Positions 2 through 33,742 of a DNA stretch of 64,000 nt are shown piece by piece; the first letter of the stretch is position 1, and the number at the start of each line of letters is the position of its first letter. The stretch covers positions 62,001 to 126,000 of IMG/VR virus record IMGVR_UViG_3300032770_000001; one strand, given 5' to 3'. Under the pieces are notes generated by a model. The model worked only from the letters and a program-made list of their open reading frames with translations, did no database searches and had not been told where the DNA came from. A program made the translations under genes and the position numbers.

Positions 2-721
2 CCCCACTACACGGACCTCACAGGCAATCAGGATGGGCAGGGGCTCTCCGCAGGCGTCCTCCAGTGGAACGCCGGACAGGGTACCCTCCAAAGCCTGCTC
101 GTGAACAACATCGCCCCCAAGATGGGTTGGGACAAGATGCAGACCTTTTTCAAGTCCGACATCCACCACTTCGCCATGCTCCGGGGACAAGACGCCATTC
201 AATGGTGTCTGGATCACTACATCGAATCCGGCTCAACGCACGTCGCGGCAGCGGCGGCTCAGTGCTGGACTGCGATGCTCGGTCAACCGGAATCGGTAGC
301 CGGACAAGTGGAAGCCGCCAAGAACTGGCAGTTGATGCGTGCCAACAAATTAGCAGCGCAGTACGCTCCAGACTTTCCGGGCTCCAGCCGCGTGCTGGCT
401 TTCTTCTTCGATGTGGTAGTTCAGGAAGGTGGAATGATTACGCAGCACGGCTCAGTACAGCCGCTCCCGGCTGGCAGCGATCCTGACTGTTCCGCAGCCC
501 TGCAACTGGCTCAGGCTAACAGCCCCCACACCCAAGCGATTTGGCAAGCAGCCACAGGCGGGGATCGACTGGCACGTTTGCTCCTGTACTACGGCTATCA
601 GCGTGCGCTTTTGGGGAATCCGACCTACTTGTGGGATGCGTGTTCTCGACGTGGCTCGATTGCCTGTCGAGGCGGGATCGTGCACAACACGAAGGTGGAC
701 TTTACTTCGTTGCTGGATTAA
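2..721 (+). CDS. Putative peptidoglycan hydrolase/endolysin (5'-partial)
   Basis: Frame is open from position 2: TGNQDGQGLSAGVLQWNAGQGTLQSLL, resembling the DGQGLSxGxLQWN motif of lysozyme-fold lysins. Confidence 0.55.
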   Translation, partial: PHYTDLTGNQDGQGLSAGVLQWNAGQGTLQSLLVNNIAPKMGWDKMQTFFKSDIHHFAMLRGQDAIQWCLDHYIESGSTHVAAAAAQCWTAMLGQPESVAGQVEAAKNWQLMRANKLAAQYAPDFPGSSRVLAFFFDVVVQEGGMITQHGSVQPLPAGSDPDCSAALQLAQANSPHTQAIWQAATGGDRLARLLLYYGYQRALLGNPTYLWDACSRRGSIACRGGIVHNTKVDFTSLLD

Positions 722-13579: not shown

Positions 13580-16500
13580 TTAGCGTGGCGGCCCGGCGTT
13601 GGCTGCCTTGGCTCTGTAATAGTCCGCGTTTCCGTTCCCCGCCGTTTCACTGGAACTAATCATGGAGTTGCGTTCTTCAATGTAGTGCTTGATGTCGGCG
13701 TCATTGTAGGTGTGGTTAATGACCGTCTGGATGACATGTCCGGTGACCTTGCCAGTCGCATCCGTAACCTGCGTATCCTGCAACAGACCACGTGACTGGA
13801 AGGCAAGAATCTGATTCTTGACCTTCTCGAATTGGTCATCGGTGAGGGTAAAGCCGTATTGTCCTGCGGTCGGACCTGTTGTAGCCTGCGTTGCCGTCAC
13901 ATTCATTGAACCCATGAGATCGGTGATCGGTTTATTCAGATCGACGAGGGCATTTGCCATGATGCCAATCTGATCGCCAGCCTGTTTCATTCCTCGTCCG
14001 GTGTTTACGCCGAAATCTCTGTCTTTGATGTCGCTGAGCAACTGGCTGGTATCGGTGATTTGTTTGTCGATACTGGTAGTATCTTCGCCATTTGAAACCA
14101 TCTGGCTCTTGATATCGTTCAAGGCATCGAGCTTACGCGACACAACATCCGTAGCATCCGCTGTGAGTTTTGCGTTGTCGGTCTGCTTCATCACGTCCCC
14201 AGCTTTTTTCTCTTCGTCAGCGTTGATGCCTGTACCGAAAATGCTGGAGTGTGCGAAGAAACCGCGAATCTCTTCCAAGATGCCGATGACTTTGTTGAAC
14301 AACGCGGGGATGATGTTCTTGATTACTTCCTCAATGGTTTGAGTCGCTCCACCGATCTGACGGGCGGTTCCGAGGTCGGTACCCTTTTGCTGCTGGAGAT
14401 CGGCCTTAGCCATTCCCTTCTGTAGTTCAGTATCGTTCTGGAACAATTCGGCAAGATCGCTGAGCAAGAAAAGCATCTTACCGCCAGTGCGACGATCCAT
14501 ACTCCAACGAGTCAATGCCTTCTGCTGCATCGTAATGCCAGCTTTCATCTCAGCATCAGTCGGCTTATCCAAATTCGGGTCGGCTTTGAACAGGTTGGGG
14601 TCGGACTTCTGGAGCATCGCGTATACACGTGCCGCCATTTCCGGACTCTGTTCGGAGGTCTGCAAACGAGTCAACGCTTGCGAGTGCATCGACTGACGCA
14701 TATCTTCCATGAACGCTGGGTCACCGAGGAACGTACCGCTCAGCATGTTGCCGAGCATCCCGGCGTCAGCCCCACCCTTAAAGAACATCGACGCCACGTC
14801 CATGCCTTTACCAGCTTTTCCCTGAATCGTCTTCAGAGTTTGCAAAGTCATAGCACGCATGATCTCAGGGTTCTTATTCAAACGTGTCGATTCGAGACCA
14901 CCTGCGATGTCAATCGCATTCTTGCCGCTGGAGAAAAGTCCGATACCTTCCGTCGTAGCCTGCGCTGCTTCCACCAATTGATATAATTGGGTGATATCGC
15001 GATCCGCGATGTTAGCTCCACCAGCACGAGCCTTCGCGACCATCGTCGGAATTTTCGCCTGAAGATTCGCCACGCCGCCCGGAGCCATCAAATCGGCCAT
15101 GATGTCTTGAGTTGACATGGCGAGACCCAAACCCTGCATCGCACTACCAATTTTGTTCGCCTGCATTCCCAGTGTTGCTTGCAGGTTCTTGGCGACCCCG
15201 GCTTGTCCCGCCGTACCCATTTGCTGAATGATGAAAGCGTTTGTCGCTTTATCCTGTGGACGGTTGACGCCATAGATCGCCGATAAGTTCTGATTCAGGT
15301 CTTCGGCGGTTTCAGTTGCCGAGGAACTCAGCATACGCATGGTACCTGCGACCTCATCAATGGCCTTGTTGAAACGGCTGAAGTGGTCTGTGATACCTTC
15401 AAGGATCGACACGTACTTGATGCCGGAAATGCCTGCCGCACGCGAGTCCTTCTCGATATTGACAAAGAAATCCTGCGCATCGCTCAAGGATTCCTGATAC
15501 TGCATCGCAAGCTTGAGCGTGGTTTCAACGCCCTGTTGATCGGTCATGCCTAGAATGCGTCCCTGCACTGAGGCGATTTGCTGCATCTGACCGAATGTGC
15601 CGCCTGCAAATTCCGACTCACCCCCATAAGCCCCAGTCCGTTTCTTGTTCAGATTGAGACTGGTAAGGTCTTCGATGTTCAGACCCATGTCCGCTACCGT
15701 CTGCGCCATTTTAAGATTGCGTTCGAAATTCAGACCGAGACGATTCGGCATCAGGTTGGTGAGGTTGGAACGAACAATATCCATCGCCTGCATTCCACCC
15801 ATCCCGCCAGTGAAAATACCGCCCTTGCCGAGCGCCGTTTCAACCTCTTTGTTCATCTTGGCGTTCACATCCCAGAGGTCAGTAAGAAACTCAGCGACCA
15901 TCAGGTATGGGTTCAATTTCCCAATGATTCCACCCAGAGCGCCCTCACCGGAGACGAGTCCCGCTCCCGGCAATGCTTTCATCATGCCGCCAAGCCCGGT
16001 TCCTGCACCACCACCATAACCACCAGCGATGAGCTTCTGCATAAACGTGTACTCGCCGGGGTCTTTACCTTCCATCCCAGCGGCAGCTTCGGAGAATCGT
16101 CTACCGTAACCCAACTGACGGTAAGTTTCCGGACGAGAATAATCCATCGGGCCGTGTCCGACCATACCCGCCTTTTGCAAACGTTGAACCATCGCATCGC
16201 GGCTGGCTACGAACTTTTCACGTCCGGCTGCGGTTGTGGCAGTAGCCTTCAGTTTCCCGAAGTCGCGGAGATTTTTCCCCGCCTGCGCCATTTGTACCCA
16301 TTTCTCCATGTCTCTGGGTTTGAGGAAACCGACATCAGCAAGATGCTTACGAACACCCATGAGGGATTTGGAGAACGTGTCCATCGTCACGTTGCCGAGA
16401 TTCTTGGACAACACGCTTGTTTCTCGATTCAGACGACCAACGAAATTCAGGAGCCCTTGATGCTTTTTATCGTCCAATGCTTCATCGAGATTCGCACTGA

Positions 16501-16978
16501 GATCGTGAATCGTCGCGTTCAACTGCCCGATGCGCTGTTTTTGACGGTTGATTTCTTTCTGACTGAGGATGCCGCGATCAATCAAGCGTTGGCTGGCTGC
16601 GACCATAGCCTCCAATGCGGCGACCGCCTCTCGCGGCATACGAGTCTTTGAAAGGTCTCTGGACATGGTCTTGGTGTAGTCGTGCATACCCTTCATCGCG
16701 TCTTGCGCATCATCAGCGGCAGCCACGATGCCGACCATCTCGGTTTTAGCTTTCTCGAACTTTTTACTGATTGACTCGGCGAGACCGGGGAAGGTCGCGA
16801 GCGTGTCTTTCAAGCTGGAAACAGTACGGGCATTGTCCGCGATGCTGTTTGCTACTTGATTGAGTCCGTTAACGAGGTTGGTGTAGTCCTGCGGAGGCAC
16901 ACCGCCGCCTCCCGGAGGGGTTCCGCCTCCCGGTGGAATACTACCGCCGCCCGGTGGTGTCATTGGGGGTGTGCCCAT
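13580..16978 (-). CDS. Tape measure protein
   Basis: 1132 aa, helical and rich in A/G/M/Q; lies between chaperone-like genes and baseplate genes. Confidence 0.7.
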   Translation of the reverse strand: MGTPPMTPPGGGSIPPGGGTPPGGGGVPPQDYTNLVNGLNQVANSIADNARTVSSLKDTLATFPGLAESISKKFEKAKTEMVGIVAAADDAQDAMKGMHDYTKTMSRDLSKTRMPREAVAALEAMVAASQRLIDRGILSQKEINRQKQRIGQLNATIHDLSANLDEALDDKKHQGLLNFVGRLNRETSVLSKNLGNVTMDTFSKSLMGVRKHLADVGFLKPRDMEKWVQMAQAGKNLRDFGKLKATATTAAGREKFVASRDAMVQRLQKAGMVGHGPMDYSRPETYRQLGYGRRFSEAAAGMEGKDPGEYTFMQKLIAGGYGGGAGTGLGGMMKALPGAGLVSGEGALGGIIGKLNPYLMVAEFLTDLWDVNAKMNKEVETALGKGGIFTGGMGGMQAMDIVRSNLTNLMPNRLGLNFERNLKMAQTVADMGLNIEDLTSLNLNKKRTGAYGGESEFAGGTFGQMQQIASVQGRILGMTDQQGVETTLKLAMQYQESLSDAQDFFVNIEKDSRAAGISGIKYVSILEGITDHFSRFNKAIDEVAGTMRMLSSSATETAEDLNQNLSAIYGVNRPQDKATNAFIIQQMGTAGQAGVAKNLQATLGMQANKIGSAMQGLGLAMSTQDIMADLMAPGGVANLQAKIPTMVAKARAGGANIADRDITQLYQLVEAAQATTEGIGLFSSGKNAIDIAGGLESTRLNKNPEIMRAMTLQTLKTIQGKAGKGMDVASMFFKGGADAGMLGNMLSGTFLGDPAFMEDMRQSMHSQALTRLQTSEQSPEMAARVYAMLQKSDPNLFKADPNLDKPTDAEMKAGITMQQKALTRWSMDRRTGGKMLFLLSDLAELFQNDTELQKGMAKADLQQQKGTDLGTARQIGGATQTIEEVIKNIIPALFNKVIGILEEIRGFFAHSSIFGTGINADEEKKAGDVMKQTDNAKLTADATDVVSRKLDALNDIKSQMVSNGEDTTSIDKQITDTSQLLSDIKDRDFGVNTGRGMKQAGDQIGIMANALVDLNKPITDLMGSMNVTATQATTGPTAGQYGFTLTDDQFEKVKNQILAFQSRGLLQDTQVTDATGKVTGHVIQTVINHTYNDADIKHYIEERNSMISSSETAGNGNADYYRAKAANAGPPR

Positions 16979-16984
16979 TTAGCT

Positions 16985-17623
16985 TTACTTCATCTCCGTT
17001 GGTTCTGAACTCAGACCCTCTTCCGGCTCCGGCTCATAGAGTTTCGAGACGGTGTCTTCAATGATCTGCTTGTTCATGTTGTCAATCTGCTCGCGTGCCT
17101 GCTCGAACAGACGGCGTTCCACGTCAGTCATCAACGCTGATTCCGGCAAACTTTCGCGGAGATGGTCTTCGATCTTCTGGCTGTGGGCCATCAAAATCTT
17201 CCAGAGCACCTGCACGATTTCCTGACCCCAGCCGAGGAGCATATTTTTGAGCACGACTTGGATATCGCGCTCCTCATTCGTCTTAGGGTCTCTGATAATA
17301 CGTTGGGCAGGCGTAAGTTTCTTGATACTGACGCCGTTGAGCCACGAGATCGAACGGGAAAGGATTTCAATCTTGACCGTCTTGATCCAGTTGTAGCCCT
17401 TAATGCCTTCGGCAGCGACCATTGACTCCATCTCGTCGGTAGACGGGATATTGGAAATGCGCAGCCGCACGCTTCTTCCACTTTTGAGGGTGATAGTCAG
17501 GACCTCTTCCAACTCCTCGATGCCAAACCCCTGAAGGCTATCGATAATCTCCTGAAGAGACTTTGGGACTTCTTCCACCTGAGGCGTCAGTTCGGCCTGC
17601 GCTACCTGTACCTTCTCATCCAT
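16985..17623 (-). CDS. Tail/baseplate assembly chaperone-like protein
   Basis: Acidic 212-aa ORF directly upstream of the tape measure gene. Confidence 0.5.
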   Translation of the reverse strand: MDEKVQVAQAELTPQVEEVPKSLQEIIDSLQGFGIEELEEVLTITLKSGRSVRLRISNIPSTDEMESMVAAEGIKGYNWIKTVKIEILSRSISWLNGVSIKKLTPAQRIIRDPKTNEERDIQVVLKNMLLGWGQEIVQVLWKILMAHSQKIEDHLRESLPESALMTDVERRLFEQAREQIDNMNKQIIEDTVSKLYEPEPEEGLSSEPTEMK

Positions 17624-17674: not shown

Positions 17675-18826
17675 TTAGCGATATCTTTTGAGCTTATCTA
17701 CTCCAGATTGAACAACTTCGCGTGCATCCCGGTCGAAATGCGGGCTCTTCTTCTTCGGCAACTGTCCTTTCTTCAGGGCAGCCTCCCGTTCCCGGATTTC
17801 TTTTTCGGTGTACACGAAAACCTTTTCCTCAACCACGCCGGGGGTGGTGTAGCCTTTGCTCTTACGCTTGGCTTCCAATGCCGCAACCCGTTTGGCTTCG
17901 TCCTTCTCTCGTGATTTATCGAAAGCCGCCATCGCTTTCTCGTGTTTGTCGCCCCGCATCATGCCCAACATTTCGCGTTCGAGATCGGCGACAGAATCAC
18001 CGGGGTGCCCCCAACCATCACCCATATCGCGCTTCGGATCGGCACGGACGATCTGCATCCATGGGTCCATGGAATCGACCGCCAGCCGCCGTTGAATGGA
18101 CTTGAGTTCACTTTGCAGCGGATCAGCATTACGTCCGGCCATCGGACGAATGGTCAACAAGGCATTCCAGTTCTCATCCAGACGTTTCTTCGCCTGCTCA
18201 CGGTACGTGCACAAGGTCGCCCACATCCGGGCGTGATCGGGAGGCTGCGCGATCTTGACGGTTTTGCCATCCGGCATGGTAACCTCTTTGTTTTCATAGG
18301 AGGTTACGTTGGTACTGTTACCAAACCAGAGGTTCTCCGAGGTCTGGGTGCATGAAAACGCCGACAGGTAAGGCCACAGAGACATGTCGTATTCGGTCAT
18401 CCGCTTCACCACCGACATCAGGCTTTGAAGCTCGGCGGCTGACATGTTGTTGATCTGGTCAATATCAAACGAAGTACCCAGCAACAGGATGTTAGTAACG
18501 AATTCATTAGGGTCTTTTATCCATCTTTTCAACCACTTACGCTCAGATGGGTGTACCCCGCGCACCCAGCCGACCTGCTTATCGCCGGACATCAATGGAC
18601 GTATCCGGGCTCCGACTTCGATCAGTTCTTCGCAGTTTTCAGACACCCGGCGACGGACGGATTCGAGGTACTCAGTTGGGGCCTGAGGGGCTTCCCCGGA
18701 GTTGATCCGGTCGAGCAGGTCTCTGCCAGAAGGTAGCGGATTACGCCGGGGGGAGGACGCCGGACGTGGGTGCCGAGTCTCGAATTGACCACCGAGGACG
18801 GAACGATTAACGGGAGGGGTTGACAT
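17675..18826 (-). CDS. Hypothetical protein (tail assembly region)
   Basis: Start at 18826 (MSTPPVN) with GGAGGA RBS. Confidence 0.6.
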   Translation of the reverse strand: MSTPPVNRSVLGGQFETRHPRPASSPRRNPLPSGRDLLDRINSGEAPQAPTEYLESVRRRVSENCEELIEVGARIRPLMSGDKQVGWVRGVHPSERKWLKRWIKDPNEFVTNILLLGTSFDIDQINNMSAAELQSLMSVVKRMTEYDMSLWPYLSAFSCTQTSENLWFGNSTNVTSYENKEVTMPDGKTVKIAQPPDHARMWATLCTYREQAKKRLDENWNALLTIRPMAGRNADPLQSELKSIQRRLAVDSMDPWMQIVRADPKRDMGDGWGHPGDSVADLEREMLGMMRGDKHEKAMAAFDKSREKDEAKRVAALEAKRKSKGYTTPGVVEEKVFVYTEKEIREREAALKKGQLPKKKSPHFDRDAREVVQSGVDKLKRYR

Positions 18827-19319
18827 TCTTTTCCTCCACAACGATCTGTTCGGAGGATGCGCGGGTCGCCCCACGGAGTTTGGAGCCCTTAGCAATCGCG
18901 GCTTCCAACTCGCGAGCCGCCTCCATTTCCTCGCGACCGAACTTGCGTTCCATCATCTCTTCGACCTGTTTGAATGTGTCTTCCTCTTGGTCATGCTGAG
19001 CCGCTTCCACCTGTCGGTAATACTTCATCGGCTCCGGTGCCTTGTAAAGACCGAGAGTTGTGAACAGATGGGCGGCAGGCAATTTACCCCTGTACACGAT
19101 GAAAATTCGGCTGATGATCGTAAGCGGAATCGCCTCAAACACTTTCATCGAATCGGTGAGTGATGTGATCGGAAAGCCGGACACTTCCGTCAGTGCATGG
19201 GCAAGCAACTGACGACGACGGTCCAACTTCGGCTCAGGCTTGATCGACAACTCCTCTCGCCAAGTGAGCGGTTTGAACCGAAATCGGTATTTCAGGATGT
19301 TGACTTCGACTGTGTCCAT
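18807..19319 (-). CDS. Hypothetical protein (chaperone-like)
   Basis: 170 aa; first gene of the minus-strand operon. Confidence 0.55.
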   Translation of the reverse strand: MDTVEVNILKYRFRFKPLTWREELSIKPEPKLDRRRQLLAHALTEVSGFPITSLTDSMKVFEAIPLTIISRIFIVYRGKLPAAHLFTTLGLYKAPEPMKYYRQVEAAQHDQEEDTFKQVEEMMERKFGREEMEAARELEAAIAKGSKLRGATRASSEQIVVEEKNVNPSR

Positions 19320-26353: not shown

Positions 26354-26983
26354 ATGGCATCTGCGGCAGTCGCCCCGGCGCGATTATATCGGGCTCTTAA
26401 CGATAAGGAACTCTCGCGGCGGTTCGCTAGCCGCCCTCTCCGTGCTTTGTTCGACGAAGCATACCACCGTCATCGCGATCAGATTTATCACGTCTGTTAC
26501 AGCTTCGTGCGCAATCAGGACGATGCCGAGGACATGGTCAGCCAGACCTTCCTGAAAGCGTGGAAGGGGCGCAAGGGTTTTCGAGCCGACGCCAAGTTCT
26601 CTACGTGGCTTCATCGAATCGCTGTCAACGAGTGTTTGATGTTCATTCGCAGCAAAAGCGCATTCGGCCACGATGCCCCCACGATCTCGCTGGACGCCGC
26701 AGTACCGAACACTGCCGGGGACGACTTCGTCAAGCCCGATGTTCCTCTCGATCCGCGCACGCTCGACCGCATGGTGGATCACCAGCAGCTACAGCGTGCT
26801 CTGCTCCGGCTGAGTGATGGTCAGCGGGAAGTGTTCGATCTGTATTTCTACAAGCAGCACACCATCGAAGAAATCCAGAAGAAATTAAAGCTGAGTGAGC
26901 CAGCGGTAAAGTCCCGCATTTTCCATGGGCGGCAGAAAGTCCTCCGGGCATTCGGTCGGCTGGATACAGCCGAGATGACCTAA
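26354..26983 (+). CDS. ECF-family RNA polymerase sigma factor
   Basis: Region 2 DAEDMVSQTFLKAW...FSTWLHRIAVNEC; region 4 LSDGQREVF...EIQKKLKLSEPAVKSRIFHGR. Confidence 0.9.
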   Translation: MASAAVAPARLYRALNDKELSRRFASRPLRALFDEAYHRHRDQIYHVCYSFVRNQDDAEDMVSQTFLKAWKGRKGFRADAKFSTWLHRIAVNECLMFIRSKSAFGHDAPTISLDAAVPNTAGDDFVKPDVPLDPRTLDRMVDHQQLQRALLRLSDGQREVFDLYFYKQHTIEEIQKKLKLSEPAVKSRIFHGRQKVLRAFGRLDTAEMT

Positions 26984-27009
26984 GTAACCCCAAAATAATT
27001 TTCAAAATC

Positions 27010-27040
27010 CTACCCTTTTCCCCGACCCGGCTGGTAGAAT
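27010..27040 (+). promoter_or_regulatory. CTACC-N20-TAGAAT promoter at the head of the RNA island
   Basis: CTACCCTTTT at 27010, CTGGTAGAAT at 27031. Confidence 0.6.
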
Positions 27041-27316
27041 GTGAGTGTAAAGGGACACCACGTTACGGGACGCAACGAGAGCCCGAACACGTAACTGGAG
27101 GTTGCTGCGCTTCCAGCGAATTGCCCGAACAGTTAGCGGCGTAACCATCTGCGGGGTGAACAGTATGAGAAACTAATTGCGGTGACCCATAACTGATTCG
27201 AACCAAGAAAAAATTATAGAAATTTCGCTCATGGGCTACGGCCCCGGAAACTACATCAACGGCTCCACCCCTTTCGAGTTGAAAATATCCTAGTCAGGGC
27301 TGGAGCCCCAATTTTT

Positions 27317-27433
27317 CGGCGGGAGCAACGAACGAGGTTCAAGACCTCGATCTTGCGTCTATGACGCGGGGTAGCTTGAATGGGTAGCTTCGGCGGCTGC
27401 GCTGATGCATCAGCGTTGTCCGTGCCCCCTCCG
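27317..27433 (+). ncRNA. Unassigned structured RNA
   Basis: Ends pair (CGGCGGGAGCA...TGCCCCCTCCG); internal arms TTCAAG/CTTGAA, GCGTC-tat-GACGC and CGCTGATGCATCAGCG. Confidence 0.35.
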
Positions 27434-27442
27434 CTTTATCTT

Positions 27443-27652
27443 ATGCACAAAATTCTCCACATCATCGAAGTCTGGTTCTCGGTGGCCGCGCTCTGGATAG
27501 TGTTCAAGGCATGGGCTGGTGGTTGTTTCGAGACGGGGCTGGAAGGCTGGCTTCTGCCGTGGGGCAAACCGAATCCCGGATGGGATGCGCCGACCGAGGA
27601 TGAGATGGAAGCTATGGGGTATGACCGATGGATTATCGAGTTGAAGTTTTAG
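27443..27652 (+). CDS. Small membrane protein
   Basis: MHKILHIIEVWFSVAALWIVFKAWAGG... Confidence 0.45.
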   Translation: MHKILHIIEVWFSVAALWIVFKAWAGGCFETGLEGWLLPWGKPNPGWDAPTEDEMEAMGYDRWIIELKF

Positions 27653-27783
27653 TTGACAACGTGGTGGTGAAGTGCAAGACTGATATTGCGCCGGGTAAGA
27701 TGCCGATAGAGGTCAAGAACCTCTCGCTGTGGGCGCAGTCGAACCGCTACTTGGCGTTCGACATCAAGGTAACAAAGGTTTAG
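27628..27783 (+). CDS. Small hypothetical protein
   Basis: 51 aa, MDYRVEVLVDNVVVKCKTDIAPGK... Confidence 0.4.
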   Translation: MDYRVEVLVDNVVVKCKTDIAPGKMPIEVKNLSLWAQSNRYLAFDIKVTKV

Positions 27784-27807
27784 CCAGCCGGGGCTGGCGT
27801 TTGAGGT

Positions 27808-27926
27808 TGGGGCGGTTCTATTTGCTGAATGAAGTGCCAACCGGGGAGACCCGGACTGAACGATAGATGGAACCACCATCATGATTGTTTTTGGGACTTT
27901 GTTGCAGGTGGTGTGCACCCGCCCCA
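27808..27926 (+). ncRNA. Unassigned structured RNA
   Basis: TGGGGCGG/CCGCCCCA closing stem; CCGGG-GAGA-CCCGG; ACCACC/GGTGGT. Confidence 0.35.
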
Positions 27927-27931
27927 CATTA

Positions 27932-28059
27932 TGCCGTGTCGTCTAGCTTGGTTAGGACGCTCACTGGAGCGAGGCTTCTGCGAAAAGGGCTATCGCTCAG
28001 TCCGAAGTAGTGGAGGTCTGGTGAGTGGACTTGGGTTCAAATCCTAAGCACGGCACCCA
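27932..28059 (+). ncRNA. tRNA-like RNA with a 56-nt branched insert in place of the anticodon loop
   Basis: Acceptor TGCCGTG/CACGGCA plus CCA, D-arm, CTCAC/GTGAG stem, T-loop TTCAAAT. Confidence 0.65.
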
Positions 28060-28162
28060 ATTTCTTAACTACGGTATTAGATAGTGTAAGCCCGGATGTG
28101 ACCGCTGCTCTGCATGTTCTCCGGGCGCTAGGAAAGCTGCCCGGTGGTGTCAGGCCGGGTCA

Positions 28163-28238
28163 GGGCGTGTAGTTCAGTTGGGAGAGCGGTTGCTTTGCAA
28201 GCAACAGGTCATCGGTTCGATCCCGTTCACGTCCACCA
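28163..28238 (+). tRNA. tRNA-Ala(TGC)
   Basis: Cloverleaf, G3:U70, encoded CCA. Confidence 0.95.
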
Positions 28239-28246
28239 AGTTTAGA

Positions 28247-28388
28247 TCGGAGCCGTCATCGAAGATCGGGATGCAGGTGGTTCGAATCCCCGGACGGCGA
28301 TAATCACGCGGAGCGGGTTGAGCCGGGTGAACAACAGGCATGGTGCTGAAATCTACCGGGTTCGATGTCCCGGCTGTTGTGCCGATCA
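28247..28388 (+). ncRNA. Unassigned RNA with two T-loop-like modules
   Basis: GATCGG/CCGATC closure; GGTTCGAATCC inside GCCGTC/GACGGC; CCGGG-TTCGATGT-CCCGG inside ACAACAG/CTGTTGT. Confidence 0.5.
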
Positions 28389-28390
28389 AT

Positions 28391-28564
28391 TTTGAAGCGG
28401 TGACCGTAGTGGGAACGGGTGCGAGGGAAATTCTGCACCAGTCGAAAGACCGTGGAGTGGAGTGAATCTGGTTTGTTCCTGTAGGATTGGGCAACCCTTC
28501 CGGGATTAGGGCAAGCTGGTGACACCAGAAACGCTACCGAAGTACCAGCAGGAATCGCTTCAAA
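28391..28564 (+). ncRNA. Unassigned multi-branched structured RNA (about 175 nt)
   Basis: TTTGAAGCGGT/ATCGCTTCAAA closure; GGGAAC/GTTCCT, GTGC/GCAC, GTC-GAAA-GAC and CTGGTGACACCAG elements. Confidence 0.5.
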
Positions 28565-28570
28565 TTTTTC

Positions 28571-28897
28571 GTGCAGGGTAAACCGCCGTATACGACCAAG
28601 GCTCATTTGAGACGCGGGATAGCGGTTATTGGCAAGGGAGAGCCGGAGAATCGGAACCCGTTTGGAGCCTACTGCACGACTCTTTTTATGCAGACGCCGA
28701 AACTGGTTTACGACTTCATCCGCAGCCGGGTGTACATCGCGACTCGATACACCGAGGACGCAATCGGGCGGATCAAGGTGCTGGAGAAGCACGACGTGAC
28801 CGAGGACTTCGATGGTATTGCGGTCCGGCGCGGATTCTGGGAAGAGACCGAGGTCGGGCAGCAAACCAGAGAGAAATTTGCAGCAGCCGAAAAATAA
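28571..28897 (+). CDS. Hypothetical protein
   Basis: 108-aa ORF filling the gap before the attenuator promoter. Confidence 0.5.
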   Translation: MQGKPPYTTKAHLRRGIAVIGKGEPENRNPFGAYCTTLFMQTPKLVYDFIRSRVYIATRYTEDAIGRIKVLEKHDVTEDFDGIAVRRGFWEETEVGQQTREKFAAAEK

Positions 28898-28900
28898 TTG

Positions 28901-28929
28901 TTGTAAGTTTTCCGAATATCTGGTACTAT
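28901..28929 (+). promoter_or_regulatory. Sigma70-type promoter of the tRNA operon
   Basis: TTGTAA-N17-TACTAT with an extended -10 TG. Confidence 0.75.
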
Positions 28930-28959
28930 GTATTAGACAGTGAATTTCCGAGAGGCATT

Positions 28960-29091
28960 ATGAACTTCAACTTCACCAACGCGGGATGGCAGACGGGCGC
29001 TGTAGGCGCGGTCGCCGCCGTGTGTGAAGCTGAAGGTATTGTCGCCGCAGGAGCGGCGGATAGCGTGCCCTCGGAGGGTTGGGATGATTAA
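28960..29091 (+). CDS. Attenuator leader peptide (43 aa, GNN-codon rich)
   Basis: GAGG RBS; MNFNFTNAGWQTGAVGAVAAVCEAEGIVAAGAADSVPSEGWDD; 27 of 43 codons are GNN. Confidence 0.75.
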   Translation: MNFNFTNAGWQTGAVGAVAAVCEAEGIVAAGAADSVPSEGWDD

Positions 29092-29120
29092 GTAACTCCC
29101 AATCAGAGACTTCCGAGGGC
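29067..29120 (+). promoter_or_regulatory. Antiterminator hairpin (2:3)
   Basis: GCCCTCGGAGG pairs with CTTCCGAGGGC; inner GTTGGGA/TCCCAAT; overlaps the terminator 5' arm. Confidence 0.75.
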
Positions 29121-29148
29121 GACCTGAAAAGGTCGCCTTTAGTTTTTT
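29115..29148 (+). terminator. Intrinsic terminator (3:4) of the attenuator
   Basis: GAGGGCGACCT-GAAA-AGGTCGCCTTT followed by AGTTTTTT. Confidence 0.85.
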
Positions 29149-29159
29149 GCAGTAGATGT

Positions 29160-29239
29160 TGCCCGGTGGAGTGAGTGGCCGAAACCCCTTCTCTTACAAA
29201 GAAGGCTTACCGCTGGTTCGAATCCAGTCCGGGCAACCA
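29160..29239 (+). tRNA. tRNA-Val(TAC), atypical body
   Basis: TGCCCGG/CCGGGCA acceptor, loop CT-TAC-AA, T-loop TTCGAAT, CCA. Confidence 0.85.
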
Positions 29240-29242
29240 GAT

Positions 29243-29319
29243 GCGGGATTAGCTCAGGCTGGTAGAGCGGTTCGTTGCCAACGAACAGGTCGAGGGTTCA
29301 AATCCCTCATCCCGCCCCA
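29243..29319 (+). tRNA. tRNA-Gly(GCC)
   Basis: Cloverleaf, loop TT-GCC-AA, C73, CCA. Confidence 0.92.
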
Positions 29320-29334
29320 AGTTTAGGAGTGAAT

Positions 29335-29550
29335 GTGAAACGCAGCAGACAACGTATCGTGAAGCTGGTGACGACCGTGGAGGTCGAGAAGCATGATTGG
29401 GGATTCCAAGTGAATCACCCGACGTTGGGTCTGGTTGCGACTGCTGACACCGAGGATGAAGCCCTGTCCAAGATGGACAAGATGGTTGTTCGGCAGCTTG
29501 AGTTTGATCTGGCGCACGCGAAAGCGAAGCCAGCAAAGATGGGCCGCTAG
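29335..29550 (+). CDS. HicB-like small protein
   Basis: AGGAG RBS; VEVEKHDWGFQVNHPTLGLVATADTEDEALSKM resembles the HicB N-terminal domain. Confidence 0.55.
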   Translation: MKRSRQRIVKLVTTVEVEKHDWGFQVNHPTLGLVATADTEDEALSKMDKMVVRQLEFDLAHAKAKPAKMGR

Positions 29551-29615
29551 CATAACTGGGAATGCATCGCACTTGCAATGCGAAGGAACGGGTTCGAATC
29601 CCGGCGTGTCCACCA
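29541..29615 (+). tRNA. tRNA-Ala(TGC), divergent (bulged acceptor stem)
   Basis: Loop CT-TGC-AA, G3:U70, CCA. Confidence 0.8.
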
Positions 29616-29632
29616 AGTTCAGATGTACCTGT

Positions 29633-29705
29633 AGTGGCTTAGCCAAGTGGTAAGGCGACCCTCTGCAAAAGGGTTAATGCGCGGGTTCGATTCCCGCAGC
29701 CACGT
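29633..29705 (+). tRNA. tRNA-Cys(GCA), no encoded CCA
   Basis: ACCCT-CTGCAAA-AGGGT; U73; 1:72 mismatch. Confidence 0.8.
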
Positions 29706-29706
29706 C

Positions 29707-29783
29707 GGGGTGTTGGAGGAGTTGGAGTCCTCGCCTCCCTGTCACGGAGGAGATCGCGGGTTCGAGGCCCGTACACCCCGCCA
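29707..29783 (+). tRNA. tRNA-Asp(GTC)
   Basis: Cloverleaf, G73, CCA. Confidence 0.92.
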
Positions 29784-29801
29784 AGTTTGAAGTAGAAGTT
29801 C

Positions 29802-29878
29802 GGTGACGTACCATAATTGGCTAATGGGCTCCCCTGTCACGGGAGAATATGGGGGTTCGAGTCCCCTCGTCACCGCCA
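29802..29878 (+). tRNA. tRNA-Asp(GTC)
   Basis: Cloverleaf, G73, CCA. Confidence 0.92.
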
Positions 29879-29880
29879 AC

Positions 29881-29955
29881 GCATCCGTGGCGAAACGGGA
29901 ACGCGGCGGTCTGCAAAACCGTCATGAGTCGGCTCGACACCGACCGGGTGCTCCA
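29881..29955 (+). tRNA. tRNA-Cys(GCA)
   Basis: Cloverleaf, U73, CCA; atypical T-loop CTCGACA. Confidence 0.88.
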
Positions 29956-29961
29956 AGATTG

Positions 29962-30114
29962 ATGCGGCGAAAAATACAATTCGCGATGCTTTGGATAGCA
30001 AAGCGGTTGAGAGCCGCAGCAGACAGTGTTGAGAAACACGCCCCAGTCGTAAATGAGGGGCGACCGACGCTGGAAGATTTGATGTTAGAGAATCGCCGAG
30101 GCGATTTGAAATAG
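29962..30114 (+). CDS. Small hypothetical protein
   Basis: 50 aa, MRRKIQFAMLWIAKRL... Confidence 0.4.
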   Translation: MRRKIQFAMLWIAKRLRAAADSVEKHAPVVNEGRPTLEDLMLENRRGDLK

Positions 30115-30126
30115 TTCTTTTACAGT

Positions 30127-30500
30127 TTGTGTCAGTGCCGGACGGTCGCGAGTGGCGTTTGTTTCAGCAGGCGTCATTCGAGGAAAGTCGGGGCACCACA
30201 GGATGGCGTACCAGAGAGACACTGGGCTCCGGTGTGCTTGGAAGCGTCGGCGAAAGCCTTCCCAACCAAGTCCCCGGATGACGATTAGAGCAACAGAGAC
30301 GAGTCGGCGTTAGTACCGCAGCACGGGCTGCGGAGGCCGGGTGAAACGGGCAATCTCTACGCGGTGCAAGCGCAAATAGGCCGACAGGAGTGATCCGCTC
30401 CGTTATGAATCGGCGGGTAGCGTGCTTGAGCGTTACGGCGACGTAACGCCTAGAGGAATGATCGTCCTCGACAGAACCCCGCTTACAGGGCTGACACAAA
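30127..30500 (+). ncRNA. rnpB: RNase P RNA (bacterial type A-like)
   Basis: GAGGAAAGTCGGGGC, GGGTGAAACGGGC, TAGAGGAATG and ACAGAACCCCGCTTA signatures; P1 TTTGTGTCAG/CTGACACAAA. Confidence 0.95.
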
Positions 30501-30508
30501 ATTGATGG

Positions 30509-30583
30509 GCGGGTGAGGTATAACTGGTGGTGCCGTGGGCCTCCAACCCACTGAGGCAGGTTCAATTCCTGTCACCCGCTCCA
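30509..30583 (+). tRNA. tRNA-Gly(TCC), atypical (A8, C33)
   Basis: GTGGG-CCTCCAA-CCCAC; U73; CCA. Confidence 0.85.
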
Positions 30584-30584
30584 T

Positions 30585-30661
30585 GCGACCATAGTTCAGT
30601 CTGGTAGAATGCTTCCTTGCCATGGAAGAGGTCGAGGGTTCAAATCCCTCTGGTCGCTCCA
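30585..30661 (+). tRNA. tRNA-Gly(GCC)
   Basis: Cloverleaf, loop TT-GCC-AT, CCA. Confidence 0.95.
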
Positions 30662-30674
30662 GATTTTAGTTGTA

Positions 30675-30726
30675 CGGGTTCGGCTAATCGGAGCCGAGTG
30701 AACGCGAGATACCCTTCTCGCACCCG
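30675..30726 (+). ncRNA. Small three-way-junction RNA element
   Basis: CGGGT/ACCCG enclosing TCGGCT/AGCCGA and GCGAGA/TCTCGC hairpins. Confidence 0.4.
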
Positions 30727-30728
30727 AC

Positions 30729-30804
30729 GCGGGAATAGCTCAGTTGGTAGAGTGCGTGCTTCCCAAGCATGAGGTCGTGGGTTCAAGTCCCATTTCCCGC
30801 TCCA
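30729..30804 (+). tRNA. tRNA-Gly(CCC)
   Basis: Canonical cloverleaf, CCA. Confidence 0.95.
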
Positions 30805-30826
30805 AGTTTTTGTGGTATCATGTAGT

Positions 30827-31228
30827 GTGGCGAATACTACATTCAAAGGTGAGATTGCCGTCCAGAAGGTGATTCTTCGGGCAATCGAAAAAGATGTAAT
30901 CGCAAGCAAGCCTGTCGTTGAAGGTTGCCGTTACGATCTGGTTTTAGATGTTGATGGGTTGAAGAGAACCCAAGTGAAGTATGCTGGACAGACTAGGAAT
31001 GGTGCAATAAAAGTTTCGGTTGCATCACAAGATAGCCGGGGCAAGAAAGGTAAGCGATACGGAGAGCATGAAGTCGATCTCATAATCGCGTATTCTCCGA
31101 TCACGGGAAAGTTTTACAAACTCCCACCCGAAGTCTGGCGAGGGAAAAGGTTGCTTCACCTACGATACGAGCCATCGAAGAACAACCAAAAGATGGGTTG
31201 TTTCGATGCGAGAGATTTTGAGTGGTAA
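30827..31228 (+). CDS. PD-(D/E)XK endonuclease (I-Ssp6803I-like, free-standing)
   Basis: KGEIAV...YDLVLD...QVKY motif; TATCAT hexamer 5 nt before the GTG. Confidence 0.8.
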   Translation: MANTTFKGEIAVQKVILRAIEKDVIASKPVVEGCRYDLVLDVDGLKRTQVKYAGQTRNGAIKVSVASQDSRGKKGKRYGEHEVDLIIAYSPITGKFYKLPPEVWRGKRLLHLRYEPSKNNQKMGCFDARDFEW

Positions 31229-31235
31229 CAAGTTC

Positions 31236-31311
31236 GGGCCTATGGCGCAGTTGGGAGCGCGTTTCCATGGCATGGAAAAGGTCGTGAGTTCGAATCTCAC
31301 TAGGTCCACCA
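31236..31311 (+). tRNA. tRNA-Ala(GGC)
   Basis: G3:U70, A32/U38, CCA. Confidence 0.95.
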
Positions 31312-31314
31312 AGT

Positions 31315-31445
31315 TTGGCGAGCGTCCGAGTTGACGTGCTCGAAGGCTGCAACCTTCCACGTTGACTGGCTCTGGCGAGTAACGGACGGAAACGCGGATC
31401 AGCTTGCAGGCTCCCGTGGAGAGGGGTTCGATTCCTCCTCGTTAA
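31315..31445 (+). ncRNA. tRNA-like RNA with a greatly expanded first arm
   Basis: TTGGCGAG/CTCGTTAA closure; CGTCCG/CGGACG long arm; terminal T-arm GGGG-TTCGATT-CCTC. Confidence 0.5.
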
Positions 31446-31503
31446 ATTTTCAGCGGTTTTATTACGTATTATAAAACCGCGTTTGACTGAAATTTTATAG
31501 CGT

Positions 31504-31580
31504 GGCCCATTCTTCTACGCTGGTTAGGAAAGCGGCCCTTCAAGCCGAAAAAGGGGGATCGTCGCCCCCATGGGCTACCA
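31504..31580 (+). tRNA. tRNA-Glu(TTC), divergent (C33, T-loop ATCGTCG)
   Basis: GGCCCAT/ATGGGCT acceptor, loop CC-TTC-AA, CCA. Confidence 0.75.
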
Positions 31581-31588
31581 AATTTTGA

Positions 31589-31666
31589 GTGCTGTTAGCT
31601 CAGTCTGGTTAGAGCGGTTGCTTCACACGCAACAGGTCGGGGGTTTAAATCCCTCACGGCACACCA
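31589..31666 (+). tRNA. tRNA-Val(CAC)
   Basis: Cloverleaf; T-loop TTTAAAT; CCA. Confidence 0.9.
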
Positions 31667-31674
31667 AGTTCGTT

Positions 31675-31827
31675 ATGGAAAAGTTACTTCGCAAAATCGG
31701 GGAATGGTTGAAAGAGTGGGAGTGCAAGCATCCTTCTCTCGTTTGGTCTCGTCTCATTAAAGTGGGAAAGCGTATGGGACGCATGTGTCCTGATTGCGAA
31801 ATGTTCATTGAAGATTTGGGCGTGTAG
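31675..31827 (+). CDS. Small Zn-binding hypothetical protein
   Basis: 50 aa with CKH...CPDC. Confidence 0.45.
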   Translation: MEKLLRKIGEWLKEWECKHPSLVWSRLIKVGKRMGRMCPDCEMFIEDLGV

Positions 31828-31893
31828 TTCAGTTGGGAGAACGCTTCCCTCGCACGGAAGAGGTCACGAGTTCAACTCTCGTCACGTCCACCA
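31818..31893 (+). tRNA. tRNA-Ala(CGC)
   Basis: G3:U70, CCA. Confidence 0.95.
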
Positions 31894-31897
31894 GTTT

Positions 31898-31958
31898 TAC
31901 GGATGCCTAGAAGTTGGAGGCACGCAATATCAGCGGCGGGTTCGATGTCCGCTCCGTA
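31898..31958 (+). ncRNA. 61-nt mini-cloverleaf tRNA-like RNA
   Basis: TACGGA/TCCGTA; TGCCT/AGGCA; CGC-AATATCA-GCG; GCGGG-TTCGATG-TCCGC. Confidence 0.55.
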
Positions 31959-31959
31959 T

Positions 31960-32035
31960 GCGCGGCTAGCTCAGTGGTTAGAGCACTTGCTTGACACGCA
32001 AGAGGTCGCAGGTTCGAGTCCTGCGCTGCGCACCA
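31960..32035 (+). tRNA. tRNA-Val(GAC)
   Basis: Canonical cloverleaf, CCA. Confidence 0.95.
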
Positions 32036-32040
32036 AGTTT

Positions 32041-32127
32041 GGAAGTGTAGCTCAATTCAGGAGAGCAACATACGACGCCGCGAGGCGCACGTGGCATGTG
32101 GTGCAGTGAGAGGCTCACCCACTTCCA
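32041..32127 (+). ncRNA. tRNA-like RNA lacking an anticodon loop
   Basis: GGAAGTG/CACTTCC acceptor, normal D-arm, extended arm capped by GCC-GCGA-GGC, degenerate T-arm. Confidence 0.55.
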
Positions 32128-32139
32128 AAGTTTTTGTAC

Positions 32140-32287
32140 CGGGTTGGTGGGGGAATATATCGAATACCCCCATGCGGTGTCGATGACGCGGCTGCTATCG
32201 CTAAACGCGGCACTGCTTTGTGACAACCCTGATCGAAGCGGCTGCATAATGCCCCGTCCATAGCAGTGGATGGTCAAAAGCAGCCGT
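32140..32287 (+). ncRNA. Unassigned structured RNA(s)
   Basis: GGGTTG/CAACCC junction with two arms, then a CGGCTGC/GCAGCCG hairpin. Confidence 0.35.
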
Positions 32288-32296
32288 AGAGTTTAC

Positions 32297-32370
32297 GGCC
32301 CTATCTTCTAGTGGCAGGAAACCCGACTCTCAATCGGAAAACGCGAGTTCGATTCTCGCTAGGGCTACCA
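32297..32370 (+). tRNA. tRNA-Glu(CTC)
   Basis: Cloverleaf, loop CT-CTC-AA, CCA. Confidence 0.92.
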
Positions 32371-32595
32371 TAATCTGAACTTCGGCAGGTCGGCAGGACG
32401 CCGAAGATTTCCAAGGCGACGGGCTCTCGTCGCCTTTCTTGCGACCGCAGGACATCCCGTAATCATGGGGGAACACCGGGGCGGGTCACCTTGACCTCCC
32501 GATAGGGCATTCCGCAGGTCACCGTATTTGGCTACCTGACCGCAACCGTAGTAGCAGAGGATGTCTCCGGTGTGGTCTTCGATGAGTTTGCCCAT
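32365..32595 (-). CDS. Small Cys-containing hypothetical protein
   Basis: CYYGCG...CSPMITGCP. Confidence 0.45.
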   Translation of the reverse strand: MGKLIEDHTGDILCYYGCGQVAKYGDLRNALSGGQGDPPRCSPMITGCPAVARKATRARRLGNLRRPADLPKFRLW

Positions 32596-32753
32596 ACTGA
32601 AGGTTTCTGTATTGGGCTATCGTAAAAAGCGGGTTGCTCCGCTTTCCACGCTGTGTATCCCACGCCGAGAAATACAACCACCACTACCGAGATCAACGTG
32701 TTTCGTAGTAAAATGTAGATTCGTCCCAGTTTCATCAGTTCGTTTGAGTCCAT
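32532..32753 (-). CDS. Small membrane protein
   Basis: AGGAGG RBS; one hydrophobic helix. Confidence 0.45.
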   Translation of the reverse strand: MDSNELMKLGRIYILLRNTLISVVVVVFLGVGYTAWKAEQPAFYDSPIQKPSVWANSSKTTPETSSATTVAVR

Positions 32754-32998
32754 GTGAATCCTCCTAGTTGATAAGTCGCTCGGACGGGGCAAAACGCACC
32801 ATCCGTTAAAAATAAATCGCACGACAAGGTCGAAGTGTTACACCCTGTCGAGGATAAGTACGTTGGCGGGGTCATTTTCTCCCGGCTCTTCAGAGATATA
32901 AACGGATGAGACGGGTAAATCTTTGCACGATATTTTCGCTCCACTAGGAATATGCGTGGGCGGGGCAAATCCTTACATTTTCGGGTATTAAATCTACA

Positions 32999-33742
32999 GT
33001 GAAACTCCAACTCATCAGCGATCTGCATACCGAGTTCTACGACATGCCCAAGGTCCACCAGATTCCTCTGGCGAAGGACGTGGACGTGCTCGTGATCGCA
33101 GGTGATCTGATTGTTCCTTCCCGGCAGCATCCCAAGGTGGTGCAGAAGGTCATCCAGTATTGGGCGGACAAGGTGGGACATATCCTGTACGTGTCCGGCA
33201 ACCACGAGTATTACGGTGGTCGTCGAGAAGAGGTCGAGTTCAAGTTGCGGTCGTGGATGCCGAGAAATTTTATCTGGCTCTACAACGATGAGATCACCAT
33301 CAACGGACAGCATTTCTACGGCGGTACGATGTGGTTTAAGCCGGAGCCGTTGAACCAGCTTTACGAGAGCAGTCTGGCGGACTTCTCTGAGATTCATGGC
33401 GATTTCCGCAAGTGGGTGTATGAGGAGAACGCCTTGTTCCGGGAGAATGCCATGAAAGTGGTGACTGAGAATTCGGTCGTGATCTCTCACCATCTGCCGC
33501 ACCCCAGATCAACGCCGTTGCAGTTCATGGGCAGTCCGATCAACCGCTTCTTCGTGTCGGATGAGTCATATCTGATCGAACAGAAACAGCCGAAGCTCTG
33601 GTTGCATGGACACACGCACCACTGGTGCGATTACAATCTTGGCAATACCCGCGTTCTCTGTTACCCTTTCGGTTACCCACATGAGCGACCGAAGCTTCCG
33701 GAGAAACAACAAAATTACGAACCTGAGGTAGTGGAATTATGA
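32999..33742 (+). CDS. Calcineurin-like metallophosphoesterase
   Basis: SDLH, AGD, GNHE, SHH and HGHTH motifs. Confidence 0.9.
   Translation: MKLQLISDLHTEFYDMPKVHQIPLAKDVDVLVIAGDLIVPSRQHPKVVQKVIQYWADKVGHILYVSGNHEYYGGRREEVEFKLRSWMPRNFIWLYNDEITINGQHFYGGTMWFKPEPLNQLYESSLADFSEIHGDFRKWVYEENALFRENAMKVVTENSVVISHHLPHPRSTPLQFMGSPINRFFVSDESYLIEQKQPKLWLHGHTHHWCDYNLGNTRVLCYPFGYPHERPKLPEKQQNYEPEVVEL

Follow-up and report, generated by a model that had tools for sequence, protein, structure and literature searches.

A putative leader-peptide attenuator upstream of a tRNA array in a huge phage genome

The DNA analysed here is a window of 64,000 nucleotides, bases 62001-126000 of the 455,708-bp virus record IMGVR_UViG_3300032770_000001, which is rated complete and whose DNA occurs in wetland metagenomes. 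Positions refer to the window unless genome positions are stated. ARAGORN identifies 61 tRNAs and a tmRNA in the genome, and a further tRNA-Trp appears at a relaxed threshold. The window holds 16 of these tRNAs, at 28163-32370 on the + strand. Directly upstream of an array of 15 of them lies a region with the following features.

28901-28929 (+), inferred promoter: -35 TTGTAA (28901-28906), a 17-nt spacer and -10 TACTAT (28924-28929), preceded by an A/T-rich stretch; the transcript is inferred to start near 28935-28936, giving a UTR of roughly 25 nt.
28946-28957 (+), segment 1, TTCCGAGAGGCA, containing the Shine-Dalgarno-like GAGAGG; complementary to segment 2 and a near copy of segment 3.
28960-29091 (+), leader ORF of 43 codons; 28 of the 42 codons after the start are GNN or Cys codons, using 14 different codons of that class.
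29042-29059 (+), G+C-rich predicted hairpin inside the ORF (CGCCGC, loop AGGA, GCGGCG), a candidate RNA polymerase pause hairpin.
29066-29077 (+), segment 2, the 5' strand of the antiterminator, within codons 36-40 of the leader; positions 29066-29076 read TGCCCTCGGAG.
29077-29104 (+), hairpin between segments 2 and 3 whose loop holds the leader stop codon (TAA, 29089-29091); it extends the antiterminator.
29111-29121 (+), segment 3, TTCCGAGGGCG, which pairs either with segment 2 or with segment 4.
29115-29148 (+), intrinsic terminator: an 11-pair stem (29115-29140) followed by a T-rich tail that runs to 29148.
29160-32370 (+), the array: 15 tRNA genes (Val, Gly, Ala, Cys, Asp, Glu), an RNase P RNA (30128-30502) and several small ORFs; the first tRNA, tRNA-Val, starts 12 nt after the terminator tail.

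The promoter was assigned by alignment with the paralogous units and the orthologues described below. A generic promoter scan did not list it, as it matches only 8 of 12 consensus positions. The RNase P RNA is of the bacterial class A (167 bits) and is conserved at the same place in related phage loci (L003 16768-17146, L004 17594-17914, L009 16297-16647 and L012 16051-16349; L numbers denote related viral loci). It would therefore be co-regulated with the tRNAs it processes. A full-text search for RNase P RNA in huge phages found one paper holding both terms, which is about genome assembly. In the window, the only Rfam matches at the gathering score are RNase P RNA and tRNAs, i.e., neither the T-box nor the leader families His_leader, Thr_leader, Trp_leader and Leu_leader match. 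A sigma-70 family gene (regions 2 and 4; Pfam E-value 1e-19) lies 2 kb upstream of the array at 26354-26983 (+). At 27932-28059 (+), ARAGORN in intron mode calls a tRNA-Arg(UCU) with a 51-nt insertion in the anticodon loop, which neither the default run nor Rfam at the gathering score calls.

Across the genome, the tRNA genes are sorted into arrays by codon class: GNN plus Cys; Ile/Thr/Gln; Tyr/Leu, then Pro, then Met/Phe; Ser/Leu; and Trp/Gln/His/Arg/Asn/Lys. There are also two tRNAs with anticodon CUA (genome 25852-26052) and a tmRNA (genome 30867-31271). In addition to the unit studied here, four more canonical units with a short ORF and a terminator precede tRNA arrays, together with an atypical one before the Pro tRNAs. 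These units share a near-identical promoter (TTGACA-N15-TGGTATT), which occurs without mismatch only at five tRNA-array leaders. A one-mismatch copy precedes a G+C-rich, apparently non-coding, structured stretch at genome 204536-204850.

Each leader is enriched in codons read by its own downstream tRNAs. The leader before the Ile/Thr/Gln tRNAs has 11 Thr codons, two CAA and one ATT, while the leader before four tRNA-Ser and tRNA-Leu(UAA) has nine Ser codons of five different kinds, plus TTA and TTG. The leader before Trp/Gln/His/Arg/Asn/Lys has AAA, AAG, CAT, CAG, CGA, CGC, CGG, AAT and TGG, and the leader before Tyr/Leu has TAT, TAC, CTA, CTG, CTT and TTG. The tRNA-Trp(CCA) found at the relaxed threshold (genome 283747-283825) lies directly after the terminator of the Gln/His/Arg/Asn/Lys leader; this leader contains TGG codons, and the orthologous array in a 463-kb relative starts with tRNA-Trp. 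The atypical Pro unit (genome 132561-132871) has CCA, CCG and CCT. It consists of the shared promoter, a 6-codon ORF and then a Pro-rich ORF that ends in TAG and continues with more Pro codons if TAG is read through, with only a weak terminator-like hairpin before tRNA-Pro. This may connect to the two suppressor-type tRNAs.

When each leader was scored against each array with wobble rules, the true assignment ranks 1 of 720 permutations, and 36 of 38 distinct anticodons have a cognate codon in their own leader. The match holds at the codon level, as CAA stands before tRNA-Gln(UUG) and CAG before tRNA-Gln(CUG). In the leader studied here, the fraction of GNN or Cys codons is 0.67 against a background of 0.363 (p = 6e-5).

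A megablast search of 27000-33000 against a collection of phage records found no match, and a search for related loci with the neighbouring sigma factor found no relatives. However, the ribonucleotide reductase gene found 43 related viral loci, and those with 68-80% identity carry a syntenic Val/Gly/Ala/Cys/Asp/Glu array. Including the own unit, this gave 13 distinct leader-terminator units that were analysed. A scan with the hairpin pattern later added a fourteenth, found on two contigs (L088 and L090). A viral scan with a leader pattern returned only the genome of L004, and a scan of metagenome contigs with a 14-mer shared by the own sequence and L004 gave 120 mostly unrelated hits and no new orthologue.

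Orthologous ORFs of 31-46 codons, each with at least one Cys codon, occur in 13 other distinct relatives. Among the 13 analysed units, the leaders have 31-45 codons after the start, and 57-67% of the codons are GNN or Cys against 36% in long ORFs of the genome. Every one contains a Cys codon, although Cys makes up 1.2% of codons in the genome. In contrast, the peptides themselves are poorly conserved. Leaders of different arrays and genomes nevertheless end in a similar (E/D)GW(D/G)-like motif (SEGWDD, EDGWDG, SEGWGA, SDGWDG) or in RWRGW (window 29074-29088; genome 19460-19446 (-) and 283651-283665; units in L075, L083 and L088). This could reflect the stem of the stop-codon hairpin, or an effect of the nascent peptide on termination of translation.

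The antiterminator, formed by segments 2 and 3 (2:3), and the terminator, formed by segments 3 and 4 (3:4), are present in all 13 analysed orthologues, and equivalent terminators are found in all orthologues and paralogues. In the own unit, the 2:3 duplex is -24.0 kcal/mol and uses the lower half of the 5' arm of the terminator, the classic arrangement of an antiterminator against a terminator. It is -14 to -24 kcal/mol in the 12 orthologues where the motif-anchored assignment placed the segments correctly; L005 was mis-assigned, but its segments match L041 by inspection. On the alignment used for the covariation test, the helix has 10 pairs, 89% of cells paired and 6 pairs changed on both sides. 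None of 500 shuffles reaches its covariation score, and slid controls reach at most 67% paired.

In all 13 analysed orthologues the stop codon lies in a hairpin between segments 2 and 3, in or beside its apical loop, and the stems differ in sequence. The candidate pause hairpin is predicted in every fold of this unit and is nearly invariant at the nucleotide level in most orthologues, while different sequences form a hairpin at the same place in L005, L041 and L014. In two relatives (L008 about 16280-16680 and L042 about 16850-17250) an ORF is inserted between the attenuator terminator and the first tRNA, possibly an HNH-type endonuclease as judged by eye from Cys and His motifs. In L014 a tmRNA gene (18806-19169, 124 bits) lies inside the GNN tRNA array.

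Six more units lie in two related complete genomes (463 kb and 332 kb), before their Ser, Trp/His/Arg/Asn/Gln/Lys, Ile/Thr/Gln and Tyr/Leu arrays. A more distant relative (L032, reductase 51% identical) instead has Ile/Thr tRNAs behind a plain promoter, without leader ORF or terminator (440-560, reverse strand); the promoter is preceded by repeated, operator-like GATGTCAC-like motifs. On this single case, the system appears confined to the closer clade.

A first-pass annotation of the sequence had described a helix between segments 1 and 2 (1:2), i.e., between 28946-28957, with its GAGG Shine-Dalgarno, and 29066-29076, as 11 bp with one bulge. It proposed that segments 1 and 3 compete for segment 2, as TTCCGAG recurs in segment 3, that the helix masks the leader ribosome binding site, that 1:2 plus 3:4 would give default termination without translation, and that the absence of G in leader codons 2-7 is consistent with an unstructured initiation region. 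The observation itself is confirmed, as every sequence statement is correct. The segments pair through TCCGAG:CTCGGA and GGCA:TGCC, 10 Watson-Crick pairs, with one bulged A (28953) and a terminal U-G. TTCCGAG recurs at 29111-29117, and codons 2-7 (28963-28980) contain no G. The annotation does not mention that the regulated genes are tRNAs.

The 1:2 helix is part of the RNAfold minimum-energy structure of 28930-29150 (-101.3 kcal/mol, z = -6.6 against dinucleotide shuffles). In the nascent transcript cut just after segment 2, segment 2 pairs with the initiation region with probability 0.93. The duplex of the initiation region with the segment 2 core is -18.1 kcal/mol, a value reached by 0.5% of 4000 random windows of the same genome and by 1.4% of shuffles of the initiation region. 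However, against a wider, G+C-rich 25-nt window around segment 2 the value is not exceptional, as 8% of real gene starts and 11% of random windows do as well. Thus, the specific complementarity to the antiterminator strand is better than chance, but not overwhelmingly so.

The alignment of the whole leaders is unreliable in its 5' half, and 1:2 could not be examined by column covariation; duplex energies of each sequence were instead compared with shuffled and genomic backgrounds. Only one other orthologue, L004, whose leader starts almost identically to the own one, has the helix (CCGAGGA:UCCUCGG, -13.2 kcal/mol, 1.1% of background). Where the own sequence pairs C29068 with G28955, L004 has U paired with A, a compensatory change. 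The other 11 analysed orthologues are indistinguishable from background or shuffles (background fractions 0.43-0.99 for the ten that were scored), and the fourteenth, L088/L090, shows no such pairing by inspection. A general pairing of the initiation region with segment 2 was also considered, as GACAUG:CAUGUC or GACGCUAU:AUGGUGUC can pair in some relatives with an ensemble probability of 0.4-0.6, but none of these is better than shuffles and it was rejected as a conserved feature. Of ten paralogous units in three genomes, only one (Tyr/Leu of the 332-kb genome) has a UTR element complementary to its segment 2, at p about 0.05. A strain variant, found among contig fragments from four of the wetland metagenomes, has five differences across 28801-29087 and none in segment 1 or 2.

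The own UTR is 16-17 nt longer than in L002 and L003 and 10 nt longer than in L004, and segment 1 lies partly in this extra stretch. It is upstream of the start codon and does not overlap the stalling codons, so a ribosome stalled on the regulatory codons does not mask it. In the Ser/Leu and Tyr/Leu units of the own genome, the competitor of segment 2 is instead found inside the ORF on the regulatory codons (CGUCGUC:GGCGGCG and AGCUACC:GGUGGCU), as in classic attenuators.

To explore the consequences, a ribosome footprint (A site -15 to +12) was masked codon by codon and ensemble probabilities were computed. A ribosome at codons 35-44, including the stop codon, gives a terminator probability of 0.98. 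A ribosome stalled at most of codons 6-30 leaves 1:2 and the terminator favoured, with partial exceptions at codons 21-22 and 26-27, because segment 1 lies outside the footprint; this would blunt sensing. However, if the ribosome binding site is also occupied, by a queued or initiating ribosome, stalling at codons 11-33 gives the antiterminator (0.6-1.0). These are equilibrium models without kinetics, and in the Ser/Leu and Tyr/Leu paralogues the terminator stays favoured at every stall position within the regulatory codons, so they are guides and not tests.

At equilibrium, the untranslated full-length leader folds as 1:2 plus terminator (probability 0.96 each; -101.3 against -95.8 kcal/mol for the 2:3 state). 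With segment 3 made but segment 4 not yet made, 2:3 is instead favoured over 1:2 by 4.3 kcal/mol. The energies of the three states lie within about 5 kcal/mol of each other, as expected of a switch. Default termination therefore holds at equilibrium for the finished leader, but during transcription only if segment 3 cannot displace segment 1 within the roughly 25 nt that the polymerase needs to reach the T tract. This is plausible, because 1:2 leaves no free toehold on segment 2, but it is an inference. The suggested unstructured initiation region is not supported, as codons 2-6, with the repeat AACTTC AACTTC, pair with GAAGCTGAAGG (codons 22-26) in the predicted folds, the repeat doing so in both the own sequence and L004, although a ribosome could still load before that partner is transcribed. 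Overall, the first-pass interpretation is only partly supported: an attenuator with competing structures is well supported, but 1:2 is not a core part of it.

We suggest that positions 28901-29148 are a ribosome-mediated transcription attenuator that gates a phage tRNA array. In this view, ribosomes that decode the Ala, Val, Gly, Cys, Asp and Glu codons quickly reach codons 35-44, where they would cover segment 2 and melt the hairpin that holds the stop codon, so that segment 3 pairs with segment 4 and transcription ends before tRNA-Val. If decoding is slow because those tRNAs are scarce, segment 2 would pair with segment 3 and the polymerase would read into the array, a negative feedback on tRNA supply. 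In a leader that no ribosome has entered, the Shine-Dalgarno region would capture segment 2 as soon as it is made, which probably blocks the antiterminator during the short decision window and closes the ribosome binding site, so that untranslated transcripts terminate. The anatomy, the codon-to-tRNA match, the covariation and the energetics are shown by the analysis, while translation of the leader, the direction of regulation and its dependence on charged tRNA, pausing and any role of 1:2 are inferred; a search for RNA evidence found only DNA libraries holding this DNA. We are highly confident that this is a working attenuator, but the role proposed for 1:2, a lineage-specific accessory shared only with L004, remains tentative, and our confidence in the explanation as a whole lies between the two.

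It is possible, and only slightly less likely than the role proposed above, that the 1:2 pairing has no function. A Shine-Dalgarno GAGG is automatically complementary to the CCUC in segment 2, and the extra matches could have come with a UTR insertion that resembles segment 3, so that the device works with 2:3 and 3:4 alone, as in most relatives. The absence of the helix from the other 11 analysed orthologues, from L088/L090 and from 9 of 10 paralogous units, the unexceptional value against the wider target window and the position of segment 1 outside the ORF agree with this, and a Fisher combination of the shuffle p-values for the 11 orthologues gives about 0.26. However, the few random windows that pair as well with the segment 2 core, the compensatory difference between the own sequence and L004 and the dominance of the helix in the predicted nascent fold speak against it. 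It is unlikely, although the strongly structured leader and its predicted fold as 1:2 plus terminator are compatible with it, that the helix acts after the decision, closing the ribosome binding site of terminated RNA so that abundant short transcripts do not soak up ribosomes or the very tRNAs that are scarce, or stabilising the released leader; most relatives show no conservation of the helix.

Two readings that dispense with the attenuator are very unlikely. The ORF could encode an ordinary small phage protein with its own terminator, the tRNAs being expressed independently, and the shared C-terminal motif could point to a peptide function. However, the codon-to-tRNA match across six arrays, the covariation of the antiterminator with the terminator, the conserved place of the stop codon in a hairpin and the poor conservation of the peptides argue against this, and the 12 nt between the terminator tail and tRNA-Val leave no room for a promoter. 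Even less likely is direct sensing of tRNA without translation, like a T-box, although the products are tRNAs and the leader is highly structured. No Rfam family matches the leader at the gathering score, the one feature shared by all units is an ORF with matched codons and a stop codon placed in a hairpin loop, and one leader would have to recognise up to 12 different tRNAs.

It can be speculated, and we consider it somewhat more likely than not, that a clade of huge phages runs a set of parallel, codon-class-specific feedback sensors, in which each array (GNN plus Cys; Ile/Thr/Gln; Ser/Leu; Trp/Gln/His/Arg/Asn/Lys; Tyr/Leu; perhaps Pro) is switched on only when ribosomes stall on codons read by its tRNAs. 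This would let the phage detect and repair selective loss of host tRNAs, for example through host anticodon nucleases or its own shut-off of the host, isoacceptor class by isoacceptor class, with the RNase P RNA needed to process the new tRNAs co-induced. If correct, it shows that phage tRNA sets are not expressed passively but are regulated on demand by decoding speed, and it gives a concrete reason why huge phages carry near-complete tRNA sets: to compensate for tRNA loss during infection. It also provides natural sensors for individual isoacceptor classes. For the narrower finding, two relatives place the putative anti-antiterminator on the leader's own ribosome binding site, an unusual variant that would separate the signal "not translated at all" from the signal "translated slowly".

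Blocks of many tRNA genes are carried by large phages, such as the T4 tRNA region and the tRNA arrays of huge phages. Full-text literature searches, whose coverage does not prove novelty, found no report of leader peptides or attenuators in front of such clusters, or of sorting into codon-class arrays that each have their own sensor. Leader-peptide attenuation itself is a textbook mechanism of amino-acid operons (trpL, hisL, leuL, thrL and ilvL in enterobacteria). As there, a short ORF directly behind the promoter carries clustered regulatory codons and is followed by an intrinsic terminator and a mutually exclusive antiterminator, whose 5' strand is covered, here by geometry and modelling only, by a ribosome that finishes the ORF. 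As with thrL and ilvL, several amino acids would be monitored by one leader. However, here the regulated genes are tRNA genes and an RNase P RNA and not biosynthetic enzymes, the codons sample nearly every isoacceptor of the array rather than repeating one codon, and the stop codon lies inside the antiterminator hairpin.

The pheST attenuator (pheM leader) of E. coli also controls a component of the translation apparatus in response to the supply of charged tRNA, but it controls an aminoacyl-tRNA synthetase, monitors one amino acid and is cellular rather than viral. In T-box riboswitches the supply of a particular tRNA decides between a terminator and an antiterminator, but they bind uncharged tRNA directly and need no translation. 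In translational attenuation of the ermC/cat type, the masked ribosome binding site belongs to the regulated downstream gene and is opened by stalling in the leader, while here the masked site is the leader's own and the downstream genes are RNAs that have no ribosome binding site. The 1:2 helix is closest to the 1:2 structure of the trp leader, which causes superattenuation when the leader is not translated, as in both an upstream strand pairs with the 5' strand of the antiterminator so that untranslated leader RNA terminates or, here, would terminate. However, in trp, segment 1 lies inside the ORF and is the stalling site, while here it is the leader's own ribosome binding site and is present in only 2 of the 14 distinct orthologues, own included.
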